The position numbers were made by a program, and so were the translations under genes. Shown in pieces: positions 3,798 to 19,916 of a DNA stretch of 64,000 nucleotides. Position 1 is the stretch's first letter, and every line of letters starts with the position of its first letter. Under the pieces are notes generated by a model. It had not been told where the DNA came from. It ran no database searches and saw nothing but the letters and a program-made list of their open reading frames with translations. The DNA lies in sequence record OR608733.1; one strand, 5' to 3'.

Positions 3798-3827
3798 TAT
3801 TTACCTCTTGTATTATTAAACCCCTGA

Positions 3828-4751
3828 TCAATGATCAGGGGCATATTCTAATGCAATACCACTACATTCAAGCAGGTGATCAAACATAGCTACTGGGCGA
3901 GATCCACCAAATGGAATCTTTTCACGATCAACTGCAACTGGTACAGATGAAGGTTTTTCTGCTGTTAGCCAAGACTCGATAACCGCAGCATGCGCCAATG
4001 GGTTATTAGTTTGGTCTAAGATTTCAGCAGTCGGACCTGGACCAACTGTACAGTTATATGACCGAGTTTCAGATTCACCGAATGATCGAATAGCTGTTTC
4101 TCGACCAGGAGTACTAGCCCTATCAGCGTTGTTTAACTTAGAAGGTAGACCAAATGGTTGTGTTTTTACAGATGCTGCTGCTGACCAGTCTTCACCAATC
4201 TTTTCTAGTAGCATCATGTAAAGTGGACCCATTAAGACATTGTCTTTAGTTGTTACCCACTTACCAGCTTGATCTCGATAAGATACCTTCCCATAGTGTG
4301 GTCGATACTTATCGCTATTAATTAATTTGTTGACTGCTGCCATTAGATCCACTGGATCATCAACTGGTGCGTAGATATATGGGAATCCATCCATTAGTAC
4401 TGTTTTAACATGTTCTGCTGGATTTGGGTGTTCCATCATTTTACTATGCATTGTTGGAGCAATGATCTCATAGAAACCTAATAGTTCTTTAAATGCATAA
4501 TCAACCCATTGCGTATTACCCATTACACTATTTAGTTGTTGCTGGGTTGGTTTGGCATGTCGATCTAGTCCAGCTTCAACGCGTAGGCGTTGAGCTAGAT
4601 CTCGTGCAGCTGCGCCAAAACCATGTTCATAAATTCGACCATAATTTGAACGACGCATGGTTGAACCACCAAAGATAATTAGATCTGCCCTATTACCATT
4701 TTCGTCAATAGGCATATCTTCATCTTCCATTACCTTACAGATGACGCCCTT
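3828..4751 (-). CDS. nvRNAP beta-like subunit gp71-73, exon 2
   Basis: The frame extends upstream of ATG 4730 as KGVICKV-MEDEDMP..D(L)I, completing beta motif HGxKGV; also RSNYGRIYE and IRSFGESETR. Confidence 0.92.
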   Translation of the reverse strand, partial: KGVICKVMEDEDMPIDENGNRADLIIFGGSTMRRSNYGRIYEHGFGAAARDLAQRLRVEAGLDRHAKPTQQQLNSVMGNTQWVDYAFKELLGFYEIIAPTMHSKMMEHPNPAEHVKTVLMDGFPYIYAPVDDPVDLMAAVNKLINSDKYRPHYGKVSYRDQAGKWVTTKDNVLMGPLYMMLLEKIGEDWSAAASVKTQPFGLPSKLNNADRASTPGRETAIRSFGESETRSYNCTVGPGPTAEILDQTNNPLAHAAVIESWLTAEKPSSVPVAVDREKIPFGGSRPVAMFDHLLECSGIALEYAPDH

Positions 4752-5058
4752 CGTTATGTTCAGGTAAGTTCGCTACGCTTACCCCGCCTCTCGTATTGCA
4801 GGCAGCTGCATGTCACCATGCAGACCAGACTATATCTTAACCTTCACCCTAGGTGGTCAGGTCCCTCCCATTTCCACTCGCTTGAGTGTACTCCGCGTAA
4901 CCGGATAGTCGTTGAACGTTCAATCCATTTCTGGAAAGCTTCGCTGCTGATTGTCTCATTGAGATGTCCCAGCAATTAGAGAGGATTTACTTGACTCTTT
5001 CGAGATCAAGCAGGCAATTTGACAATATCCATTCCTGAGAGATGGATGGATATTAATT
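4752..5058 (-). ncRNA. Group I self-splicing intron, 307 nt, no ORF
   Basis: Core elements P AAUUGCUGGGAC, Q AAUCAGCAG, R GUUCAACGACUA and S AAGAUAUAGUC; exon 1 ends in U (5059) and the intron ends in G (4752); excision restores HGG|KGVICKV in frame. Confidence 0.93.
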
Positions 5059-6237
5059 ACCACCATGAAAATCAGTCATCTTGAAAGCACCAGCAGGCAT
5101 CTTTTGGGCTTTGTAAGTTACTTCGACTCGCCATTCATCTAGTGGGTCTAGTCGATAGAATCGAGATAGTTTACGGACATTATCAGGTTGAGGTAGGAAC
5201 ATCTGTGCAGTTACAATAAGACGTTCAAATTCCTCAGTGATATGTAGATCATCTTTACGACGTGCTAATAGACCACGATAGATCTTTAATAGTTCTCGAT
5301 AATAACTGCTAAGATGAGTATGATATTTAACTAATTGTGCATCCATCCCTGTTGGAGTGGGTGATGGATTTACACGCTCATCTCGCCAGATATCAATATC
5401 AATAACCTTCGCACCAGGTGTGCCAATAACAGCTCTATCGAAAGTTCTATCTAGTGTACGAAGTGCCCTAGGAGTCATCTCGGCAGGAGCTAGATCATCA
5501 TCATGGTCACGGATGGCGAAGATTACGCCATCTGGTCGGATAACATCACCAATGTCTGGGAATGGTTTATAGACCTTATCATCGCCATACATGTTTAAGA
5601 AGAAAGCTTTCCTACCAGCATTAGCTACAGCCGTGCTATAACTAGTTGGCATCATCCTTTTAAGGAAATTCTTATTAGCTACGAATCCATCTTCAATGGT
5701 ACCAGCGGCAGATAGGAATACAACATTAGCATTAACACCCATCCCTAAAGTACCGTCTTTCTTAACTGCACCAGACTGTGCAATCACTGTGTCTTTAGAG
5801 AACATTTCATTTGGGGCAATGGTTTCCCACACTTCTCGATTCTTTACAAGTTCATAACCAAAGTCTTGGTGATGACTCATGTACTCGGGAACATGTAAGA
5901 CACCAATGGTTTTATATTTGTCAAAATAGTTTTCGTAGATAATAGTTGTTACCGGGTTAGATCTAATACTGTCTTTACCAATACCCGTTGGATATTTTCT
6001 AAGAACATGTAGTACACGACAATCCTCAGGAAAACGAACATCATGTGTATACTTGGCATACTCTAATTCAGCACCCGTTAGGAAATAACGCGATTCATTT
6101 CCATTTACTTCTGGTGCCTGGCCAATATGTGTTACAAACATAGCACCCCGTGCAGATGAGGTAGTGCCATACCAAGGATCTAAACCAGTATGCCCTAATA
6201 GGGTTAGATCAATTTCACGTTTACCTAGTTCAGCCAT
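5059..6237 (-). CDS. nvRNAP beta-like subunit gp71-73, exon 1 (spliced product 700 aa from ATG 6237)
   Basis: SARGAMFVTHIGQA, GVNANVVFL..GTIEDGFV and FKMTDFHGG are RNAP beta motifs; the unspliced frame stops 2 codons into the intron. Confidence 0.92.
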
Positions 6238-6343
6238 TTTGTTTATCACCATTAATTAGACAAGATGCAGTACTACTATATTTCTTATTTGCACTGTTTT
6301 TAGATATAGCCTTTTGTAAGACTTCAATGTCTGGTATCACCAA
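6230..6343 (-). CDS. Putative 37-aa leader ORF (below track cutoff)
   Basis: AGGAGG 7 nt before TTG 6343; MVIPDIEVLQKAISKNSANKKYSSTASCLINGDKQNG; its TGA lies inside the first codons of gp71 (ATGGCTGA). Confidence 0.45.
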   Translation of the reverse strand: MVIPDIEVLQKAISKNSANKKYSSTASCLINGDKQNG

Positions 6344-18318: not shown

Positions 18319-18540
18319 TTATTTTGCTTTTAGCCATTCTTCTAATGGCGGTAAATACTTCTCATGTGCCCAGTTAATAATTGTTTCTACAACAGGACCC
18401 TGTAATTCAAGGTTACCTGAGATTTCATGTGGTTCATCAATAGATAGAACCCATGTATGTGGAGCAATGCGTTCAGTTGCTTTAGTTAAATACACATCAG
18501 GCATTAACGTAAGATTCAATTGATCGCCGTCAAAATCAGC
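18319..18540 (-). CDS. nvRNAP beta-prime-like subunit gp55-56.1, exon 2
   Basis: Begins ADFDGDQLNL; joined to exon 1 (..KAPN) it restores the catalytic NADFDGD motif. Confidence 0.93.
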   Translation of the reverse strand, partial: ADFDGDQLNLTLMPDVYLTKATERIAPHTWVLSIDEPHEISGNLELQGPVVETIINWAHEKYLPPLEEWLKAK

Positions 18541-19916
18541 CGTTATGTTCGGTATCAGTCGTTAATTGATACCCGCACCATTACGTGCAGCTCTAGCTCT
18601 CGCTAGAAGACCAGACTATATCTTCACCCTTCCTCTCGGAGTGGGGTGTCTCCCATTTCGGATCACTTGATCCTACATCCTATTTCTAGGACCGGCGCAC
18701 CTGGTGCCGTAATAGTCGTTGAACGTTCCACATATTACAATTAAGTAATTTAGCGGCTTCGCTGCTGATTGTCTCTACCTAATCATTTTCAAACATTCGC
18801 ACTTACTGTTTCCAGTTATGCTGTAGTTGATTAGTCTAATGAGAGTTTCCAGCAATTAGAGAGAACTCAACCCAATGATTACTCATTGGGGGAACTAGAC
18901 TTGATTAACTTAATAAGGTATTTATCAAGCACCCCATTCTTTTCAAAGATTGCTCTTCGAATAGTATTCGGATGCTTAATACCGACATCTCTTGCAAAGT
19001 GTGGAATACTTGGATACACTTTGGTAGTGTTCAAGATGGTGTCAGTTACTTCAATTGGAGTGCCTTTTCCATTACTAGGTTTTCCAAATGAGGCTTCAAT
19101 TTCTTTCTGAGTATATTTAGGGAAATCTTCAGGATTAGCAGTATATGAGAATACCAGACCATCCATGATTTCCTTACTACCTCTAACTAGATGGTAATAG
19201 GCTTTATTACGTTTAGTACCTAGTGCAAGTTCCATTTCTGCTAAGTTATGAAACACATGTAATGTCTTAGTCTTATAGTCTAAAACATAAACTGTCTTGG
19301 TACTTTCACGATCAGCAATCTTAGTCTCACCGGTAATAAATTCAAATGTGAATCTATTTCTATACGGCTTAGTCTTATGGTCACGTATAATAACCCAAAC
19401 CGTATTTTTATTAACTCCTAATGCCCGAGCAAGTTCATTCATCGAGTAATAAGTAGTCTTTTCACCAGTGGTAACATCAGTTGCAATTACCCGTCTATTT
19501 TCTTTTCTTAATCCATTTTTGTAAGCATGCTCAATGTTTTCACCACGAGTCATCCATTCCAAATTGGATGGTAAGTTATTATGTTTGTTGCCGTCTTTAT
19601 GATTGACTTCATATGTTGGTCCAGGAGATGGACCATGGAATGCAGTACAAATTAGAATATGCGCTCCCTTACTTTTTGATGTCTTTTCATCATTTTTTGC
19701 ACCGATATTGAGATATGTCCCAATTGATGTTTTAGTAAGGAAGAAATTACATATTCTATTTAACCGCTTATGACGAATCGTTCCTAAGTTACTAGCCTCA
19801 TAAGCTGAGTATCCAGGAATATCTCGCCATTCAATTTTAAATGAAGCCGGATCAAAGACGGACACTACTCCGTTTTGTTCCATTGTCTTTTACCTTATTT
19901 GGTTATTCAATTGTCC
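18541..19916 (-). mobile_element. Group I intron (1376 nt) carrying an HNH homing endonuclease
   Basis: P AAUUGCUGGAAAC, Q AAUCAGCAG, R GUUCAACGACUA and S AAGAUAUAGUC at 18600-18860; U at the 5' splice site (19917) and terminal G (18541); inserted between N and A of NADFDGD. Confidence 0.95.
18879..19883 (-). CDS. NUMOD4-HNH-NUMOD1 homing endonuclease (gp56-like)
   Basis: NUMOD4 (EWRDIPGYSAYEASNLGTIR), HNH (HILICTAFHG..VNHKDGNKHNNLPSNLEW) and three NUMOD1-like repeats (e.g. YYSMNELARALGV, VYPSIPHFARDVGI). Confidence 0.93.
   Translation of the reverse strand: MEQNGVVSVFDPASFKIEWRDIPGYSAYEASNLGTIRHKRLNRICNFFLTKTSIGTYLNIGAKNDEKTSKSKGAHILICTAFHGPSPGPTYEVNHKDGNKHNNLPSNLEWMTRGENIEHAYKNGLRKENRRVIATDVTTGEKTTYYSMNELARALGVNKNTVWVIIRDHKTKPYRNRFTFEFITGETKIADRESTKTVYVLDYKTKTLHVFHNLAEMELALGTKRNKAYYHLVRGSKEIMDGLVFSYTANPEDFPKYTQKEIEASFGKPSNGKGTPIEVTDTILNTTKVYPSIPHFARDVGIKHPNTIRRAIFEKNGVLDKYLIKLIKSSSPNE

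Follow-up and report, generated by a model that had tools for sequence, protein, structure and literature searches.

A compact, nuclease-less group I intron in the non-virion RNA polymerase beta gene of a Phikzvirus, very probably derived by deletion from the phiKZ-type mobile intron

The 64,000 nt-long stretch of sequence record OR608733.1 analysed here (the window) contains a gene for the beta-like subunit of the non-virion RNA polymerase (nvRNAP) that is interrupted by a group I intron without a nuclease gene, which raises the questions of whether such an intron still splices, how it came to be without a nuclease and whether it shields its carrier from the intron nucleases of related phages. 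The source phage is a Phikzvirus; positions 3800-6300 of the window share 100% identity with Pseudomonas phages 124.01, 2PS and 6B, and 97-99% with about 40 others. Rfam located two group I introns on the minus strand of the window, at 4806-5034 and 18591-18916. The former match, to RF00028, reached 84.2 bits (E 6e-20), above the curated gathering threshold of 50, with 253/253 model positions matched, and belongs to a complete group I intron of 307 nt that runs from 5058 to 4752 on the minus strand, begins with AAUUAAUAUCC and has the 3′ end ...AACAUAACG, the terminal G being 4752. The gene is organized as follows.

5059 to 6252, minus strand: exon 1 of the nvRNAP beta-like subunit (phiKZ gp71), ending ...FHGG (ORF list, translation)
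4752 to 5058, minus strand: group I intron, no nuclease gene (Rfam, KEN49 allele, RNA-seq joint)
3828 to 4751, minus strand: exon 2 (phiKZ gp73), starting KGVICKV (translation, Pfam, PDB 7OGP)

The open reading frame of exon 1 comprises 399 codons (6252-5053; the start annotated in phiKZ corresponds to window position 6237) and ends ...FHGG, followed by an asparagine and a stop that lies two codons inside the intron. The 3′ end of exon 1 reads ...TTT CAT GGT GGT at 5059 and the 5′ end of exon 2 reads AAG GGC GTC at 4751, and intron excision restores the reading frame as FHGG/KGVICKV. The essential nvRNAP beta gene (phiKZ gp71/gp73) is interrupted within the sequence HG-x-KGV around FHGG/KGV, which we take to be the conserved motif of RNA polymerase beta subunits. 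In searches made for each exon separately, exon 2 gave a match to Pfam PF00562 (Rpb2 domain 6) of 28.8 bits. The intron limits are confirmed in three independent ways: by phage KEN49 (PP456877.1), a natural intronless allele with one continuous 705-codon CDS whose DNA lacks exactly these 307 nt; by the fused chain C of PDB 7OGP (phiKZ non-virion polymerase, 700 aa, named PHIKZ071), in which exon 2 makes up residues 394-700; and by the RNA-seq joints described below. The coordinates 4752-5058 given in the original prediction, which had described a complete 307-nt intron without an ORF, are thereby exact. On the sense strand of the intron we found no ORF longer than 43 codons, and the listed ORF at 4975-4844 (TTG start) sits within the ribozyme core.

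Logan contigs of RNA-seq runs from three studies contain a joint that skips 307 nt, from 4749 to 5057, which, given two ambiguous letters, equals 4751/5059; one of the joint-bearing contigs is 2201 letters long, with more than 440 letters on either side. At 5095, 5104, 5107, 5152 and elsewhere, the contigs show the exon haplotype of phiKZ, they are without the KEN49 variants adjoining the junction, and the unspliced form is present in the same runs, all of which identifies the joint as spliced RNA and not as intronless DNA. The runs represent the nuclease-bearing phiKZ type, with contigs that have 916 letters between 5032 and 5038. The RNA-seq joint shows splicing of this phiKZ version, which is near-identical to the window intron, and the exact window allele is likely to splice as well because its core differs from that of phiKZ at one position. 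Under the conditions of a long-read transcriptome study, phiKZ was reported to show no evidence of splicing (10.1101/2023.10.13.562163); the short-read contigs show phiKZ splicing that the long-read study did not detect.

The second intron of the window (18541-19905, minus strand; Rfam 85.5 bits at 18591-18916) encodes a 334-aa nuclease with NUMOD4, HNH_3 and three NUMOD1 domains (19883-18879) and splits the beta-prime subunit just before ADFDGD, with exon 2 starting at 18540 and the 5′ splice site probably near 19905. This intron is already known, as chain A of PDB 7OGP (508 aa, ‘PHIKZ055 / PHIKZ056.1’) contains exon 2 of its gene at residues 436-508. RNA contigs of this other intron map to two 21-nt core blocks of the first one (4822-4842 and 4963-4983) with 210 other letters between them, and the loose ends of these contigs match P9 of the 18591-18916 intron; near-identical core segments common to both introns could mislead read mapping.

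The energy fold recovered P1, P2, P3, P4-P6, two extra hairpins, P8, P9, P9.1 and P9.2, and the elements of the ribozyme are arranged as listed here, from the 5′ to the 3′ end of the RNA.

5013 to 5061, minus strand: extended P1, exon GGU (5061-5059) and intron AAUU (5058-5055) paired with AAUUGCC (5019-5013) (energy folds)
5024 to 5054, minus strand: P1a hairpin, 5054-5046 paired with 5032-5024 (9 bp), 13-nt loop at 5045-5033 (fold, motif coordinates)
4990 to 5010, minus strand: P2 hairpin (fold, variant pairing)
4828 to 4985, minus strand: catalytic core, P4-P6 included (Rfam alignment, fold, motif coordinates)
4985-4979 paired with 4869-4862, minus strand: P3, core
4916-4905, minus strand: J6/7 and 5′ strand of P7, core
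4904-4875, minus strand: P7.1/P7.2, two extra hairpins between the 5′ strand of P7 and the 3′ strand of P3 (fold)
4861-4841, minus strand: P8, core
4836-4828, minus strand: 3′ strand of P7, core
4752 to 4823, minus strand: P9 (4823-4806), P9.1 (4803-4786), P9.2 (4783-4763) and the 3′ tail ending in the terminal G (Rfam, fold, motif coordinates)

The two extra hairpins were placed by the energy fold at 4904-4893 and 4888-4875, in a stretch that the Rfam alignment treats as an insertion, and suggest that the intron is of the phage type with P7.1/P7.2 hairpins (IA2-like). P2 begins at intron position 49, in agreement with the approximately 50 nt between the 5′ splice site and P2 noted earlier. 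The energy folds of P1, run on the window and T2P versions, place a U.G wobble at the 5′ splice site (U5059 with G5015) within the pairing of GGU-AAUU with AAUUGCC, and this extended P1 encloses the hairpin P1a and a 4-nt bulge, GUCA. AAUUGCC is conserved in the window, phiKZ, FBPa36 and T2P types of the intron and its GCC also in PhiPA3, and the exon nucleotide at -1 is U in all intron-bearing alleles and G in intronless KEN49. The P1 proposed originally, exon UGGU with intron GUCA beyond a hairpin, stands in part: the 9-bp hairpin is present and the pairing can be drawn here, but as the main pairing it was rejected, since GUCA reads UUCA in phiKZ and UUAA in T2P while GGU-AAUU/AAUUGCC is kept in all variants. 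That the phiKZ transcript is spliced according to RNA-seq, although its bulge reads UUCA, also counts against UGGU/GUCA as P1.

Across the intron variants, pairing is preserved at every variant position that lies in a helix, and the P2 pair 55:64 varies fully compensated between C-G, U.G and U-A; these observations indicate that the ribozyme remained under selection after nuclease loss. By homology, guanosine would attack after U5059, which would be held in P1 (GGU-AAUU with AAUUGCC), and the terminal G4752 would direct the ligation of the exons to yield the 700-705-aa gp71-73 subunit. The intron is probably a working self-splicing ribozyme, for which self-splicing in vitro would be predicted.

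The counterpart in phiKZ (NC_004629), where gp71, gp72 and gp73 are adjacent in this order, shares the gene, the insertion point, the ribozyme and the fused protein with the window. In contrast to the phiKZ intron, the window intron is without a 916-nt gp72 segment in the tip of the P1 hairpin; in blastn comparisons these 916 nt correspond to 5 nt of the window, which are listed here as a feature.

5033 to 5037, minus strand: deletion scar CAGGA (blastn against phiKZ, OMKO1 and FBPa36; junction sequences; RNA contigs)

The 916 nt comprise the ribosome-binding site, the start codon and most of the ORF of gp72, which in phiKZ sits in the tip of P1a and whose frame continues across the 3′ strand of P1 and the whole of P2 until it meets a UAA that directly follows P2 and precedes P3. 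Record order and blastn thus bear out the statement, in the original prediction, that the phiKZ intron holds the HNH gene gp72 whereas that of this phage does not, and the alignment of the gp71-73 locus maps the deletion. Outside the replaced stretch, 3/302 positions differ between the window and the phiKZ intron, namely position 36, in the core beyond the hairpin loop, and positions 22-23, in a remnant of the ribosome-binding region of the nuclease. Position 36, G in the window and U in phiKZ, is the sole difference in the 281 nt past the scar. The Pfam matches of phiKZ gp72 to HNH_3 (24.1 bits, cut-off 24.8) and NUMOD4 (20.2 bits, cut-off 23.4) both stay below the cut-off, and that of the FBPa36 nuclease to NUMOD4 lies above it (24.8 bits). 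No gp72 orthologue was found in the genome of 124.01, which is 100% identical to the window at 3800-6300; the only gp72-related protein there is the nuclease of the other intron, with 28% identity over the N-terminal 165 residues. With no encoded nuclease and the gp72 DNA absent, the intron does not qualify as a mobile (homing) group I intron that encodes its own homing endonuclease. Upstream of gp72 in phiKZ (L003:4466-4489), the ribosome-binding sequence was seen by eye to lie in a small hairpin, CAUCUC-UUGG-GAGAUG, which could keep nuclease synthesis low, as is the case for other nucleases of phage introns.

How widespread this state is within the genus became clear from a survey of the 47 Phikzvirus records in the phage collection, which fall into the following types.

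37 records: window type, identical 58-nt junction (many isolates, PaZh_1 included)
4 records: second nuclease-less type, 313 nt (T2P, U1B, U5, phi9_PA9)
5 records (4 phages): nuclease-bearing (phiKZ twice, OMKO1, fMGyn-Pae01, FBPa36)
1 record: intronless (KEN49)

All three states that had been envisaged for the genus, intron with nuclease, intron only and intronless, therefore exist (5, 41 and 1 of 47), and the window allele is not peculiar to this phage but the majority allele, found with an identical junction in 37/47. Most of the isolates were obtained from sewage as therapy candidates, which makes the sample behind these allele frequencies a biased one. The two nuclease genes are themselves distinct, with the FBPa36 nuclease DNA only 80.5% identical to gp72. 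PaZh_1 (MN871489.1) combines the window-type junction with a 29-nt deletion of P4/P5 in the core, equivalent to window positions 4950-4978, and was rejected as a fourth allele; the record is unannotated and labelled UNVERIFIED_ORG, and the deletion, if real, would disable splicing of an essential gene, which makes an assembly error probable. A scan of IMG/VR with the exon-intron junction returned only one PA7-like contig and no extra alleles or intermediate decay states, and no hit came from scanning metagenomes with a conserved word of exon 1. The number of group I introns per genome also differs within the genus (124.01 and FBPa36, 2 each; phiKZ and KEN49, 3 each; T2P, 4). The three introns of KEN49 cluster at 249.3-251.4 kb, with none in gp71/73, and a phiKZ intron near 186.4-186.7 kb, presumably the gp179 intron, is absent from 124.01.

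The junctions of both nuclease-less types retain traces of the lost gene. In the T2P type, the ribosome-binding hairpin survives complete, together with the ATG and in the same layout as in FBPa36; the last bases of the former ORF follow immediately, and a 4-nt GATG repeat marks the joint. In the window type, only the first half of the gp72 ribosome-binding region is left, and the deletion breakpoints show no clear microhomology. Ribosome-binding remnants without a gene let us read these junctions as deletion scars, and the idea of a degenerate state, raised before this analysis, gains support from them. Furthermore, FBPa36 and T2P share five core variants, of which 100 and 244 are unpaired and 55, 197 and 220 lie in helices with pairing kept, as well as the exon 2 changes at +3/+6 and the L1 5′ sequence, and the window type groups with phiKZ/OMKO1 in core and exon variants. 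As each core lineage has a nuclease-bearing and a nuclease-less member, at least two independent nuclease deletions are indicated.

The nuclease-bearing form appears to have moved recently. Over 1218 nt, the introns of phiKZ and OMKO1 show no difference, yet 42/1174 and 20/924 sites differ in the exons of these phages. The exon 1 of OMKO1 differs from that of intronless KEN49 at 3 sites, two of which, -4 and -1, are the last variable positions before the junction, and in exon 2 both share a common haplotype from +18 to +354, with differences at +6 and +9. The OMKO1 allele thus looks as if the intron had homed into a KEN49-like background and co-converted only a very short tract; the same pattern could also have arisen if an intron was lost precisely, along with a small patch. 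Between OMKO1 and FBPa36 the exons are near-identical (8 and 2 differences), and the nuclease ORFs of the phiKZ/OMKO1 type and FBPa36 differ at 183/951 positions (19%), with 84 synonymous and 58 non-synonymous codon changes between FBPa36 (L002:1775-2725) and phiKZ (L003:4487-5437). In the same comparison, the core beyond the ORF differs at 4/235 positions (1.7%). It appears that the nuclease gene was either exchanged or evolved independently of its intron, and the far stronger divergence of the ORF implies partly separate histories of ORF and ribozyme, which leaves some room for nuclease gain.

Such a gain would be central if the ORF-less intron were ancestral and a free-standing HNH gene had later invaded the P1 loop of the resident intron. 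This scenario could explain why the ORF differs so much more than the core while the OMKO1 and FBPa36 exons are almost identical, and it would fit both the majority status of the ORF-less form in the genus and the ORF-less 450-nt intron at the same site in PhiPA3, a phage of another genus. We nevertheless consider it improbable, as T2P keeps the ribosome-binding hairpin and ATG as in FBPa36 with no gene behind them and each ORF-less type shares variants with one nuclease-bearing type, which would call for two invasions at the same nucleotide. A defunct intron remnant or an error of assembly, with the polymerase subunit made as two proteins, is scarcely conceivable: most GenBank records do annotate two CDSs and no intron, but the junction is identical in 37 independent records, the core is complete with pairing preserved across variants, and the phiKZ enzyme holds one fused 700-aa chain that is split inside a conserved motif. 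We very much favor the interpretation that this is a working intron from which the nuclease of a phiKZ-type mobile ancestor was deleted, and which is now the commonest allele at a late stage of the homing cycle. The ancestor would have been a phiKZ-type mobile intron with the HNH nickase gene gp72 in the tip of the P1 hairpin, and a single 911-nt deletion would have removed gp72 and left the ribozyme intact. Unable to start homing, the resulting intron would spread by descent and ordinary recombination, and would occupy and so split the homing site. With few empty sites left, nothing would maintain the nuclease, and the rise of the deleted allele to the commonest in the genus would be the expected late stage of the cycle. 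The deletion and the allele frequencies can be read directly from the records; the direction of spread we infer.

The name originally proposed for this allele, a possible immunity-only allele, concerns protection of the occupied site. Both junction sequences equal those of phiKZ's own allele (36 nt upstream, 149 nt downstream), so whatever spares phiKZ should spare this phage, and resistance of the window allele to gp72 would be expected. Mobilization by the enzyme at 18879-19883, also put forward at the outset, is unlikely given its 28% identity to gp72 over the N-terminal 165 residues only; a co-infecting phiKZ-type phage could supply gp72 in trans. From here it is a tentative step to propose that selection maintains the nuclease-less intron for the resistance it would confer: by splitting the gp72 target, it would let its carriers survive co-infection with nuclease-bearing phiKZ-type phages without the cost of a nuclease. 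Co-infecting phiKZ is harmed by an HNH nickase from a PhiPA3 intron, which nicks the intronless RNAP gene of phiKZ (PMC11620839). The surroundings of both splice sites match phiKZ's own allele, and the empty site occurs in 1/47 genomes, with differences at its four nearest synonymous positions, all of which is in line with resistance; yet neutral decay after near-fixation of the intron predicts the same pattern, and with only 4 phages in the collection carrying the nuclease, any such pressure looks weak today.

Protection would fail if gp72-type nickases recognized mainly exon 2 and nicked intron-bearing DNA as well, in which case the synonymous differences at +3/+6/+9 of exon 2 would decide. 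I-HmuI and I-HmuII of Bacillus phages are said, after Goodrich-Blair and Shub in 1996, to nick intron-bearing DNA too. Gp72 and its FBPa36 version show the NUMOD4 and HNH_3 layout, the FBPa36 nuclease has a faint match to an I-HmuI NUMOD-like domain, and the start of exon 2 tracks the nuclease, reading AAG GGC in the phiKZ type, AAA GGT in the FBPa36 type and AAG GGA GTT at the empty site. We regard this reading as unlikely, as the Pfam matches are weak, most of them under the curated cut-offs, and the exon variants are possibly just linked markers from co-conversion. A three-allele contest at the gp71/73 site, in which the nuclease-less form would be the selected resistance allele and the two diverged nuclease alleles, each linked to synonymous variants of its own in exon 2, would compete like I-HmuI and I-HmuII, is a speculative and rather doubtful extension by analogy; if true, it would provide a natural system for intron nucleases as weapons among nucleus-forming phages.

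The survey also bears on gp72 itself. Deletion mutants of orf72 in phiKZ are viable according to a transposon study, which blamed polar effects (bioRxiv 10.1101/2025.11.23.690004), whereas an antisense knock-down screen reported a strong PHIKZ072 phenotype and suggested an early role (PMC12571901). The absence of gp72 from 42/47 Phikzvirus genomes is in line with the viable deletions, and together they argue against an essential early role of gp72; interference with the polymerase pre-mRNA is the better explanation for the PHIKZ072 phenotype in the knock-down. In most GenBank records of these therapy-candidate phages the polymerase subunit is annotated as two unrelated proteins, and the exact intron limits lead to a single correct gene model of 700-705 aa. 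Nuclease-bearing, nuclease-less and empty alleles occur in culturable close relatives, which makes protection by an occupied site directly testable. In the literature on phiKZ introns, we found no description of the nuclease-less allele or of the three-state polymorphism; the KTN4 paper states only that the HNH genes differ from phiKZ. The intron was already known, and the polymorphism at this locus is a textbook case of the homing cycle, helpful to annotation and suited as a test system but not surprising in itself.

Beyond the genus, we sampled homologues in 232 jumbo-phage records by tblastn with the natural intronless CDS of KEN49, and matches in two pieces were found only in Phikzvirus records and PhiPA3. 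Locus 065 of PhiPA3 (Miltoncavirus; HQ630627.1 55005-55454; L008:1462-1911) contains, at the identical FHGG/KGV codon boundary of the homologous nvRNAP beta gene, a group I intron of 450 nt (Rfam 79 bits) that likewise has no ORF, and the GCC guide sequence and several core blocks are common to both introns; it differs in its length of 450 nt, in a diverged 5′ half and in a host protein that is only 70% identical. A search of the PhiPA3 intron for a nuclease relic gave no convincing result: apart from the conserved core blocks, it yielded only 13 nt that match the 3′ strand of P1a. The PhiPA3 record annotates the region only as a misc_feature ‘fragment’. Another parallel in this phage is the nickase gp210, for which interference at another RNAP gene was described without mention of gp72 (Birkholz et al. 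2024, PMC11620839). The parallel lies in an HNH nickase whose group I intron likewise interrupts an RNAP gene of a chimallivirus, and it serves as a model for why site occupancy could matter in co-infection, but it concerns the virion RNAP gene, another site and another enzyme, whereas the window allele is without a nuclease.

By weak matches, gp72 seems to have the same broad NUMOD4 and HNH layout as I-HmuI/I-HmuII. These are the diverged nucleases that the Bacillus phages SPO1 and SP82 carry in near-identical introns, and the phiKZ and FBPa36 types likewise present two diverged nuclease alleles in near-identical introns. In T-even phages, introns with lost or truncated nuclease genes are known, for example T4 nrdB / I-TevIII, and in the homing cycle of Goddard and Burt the nuclease decays once targets become rare. 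As in these cases, intron with nuclease, intron only and empty site stand side by side in related phages; what differs here is the clean deletion, its occurrence in two independent versions, and its location in an RNA polymerase gene of a nucleus-forming phage.
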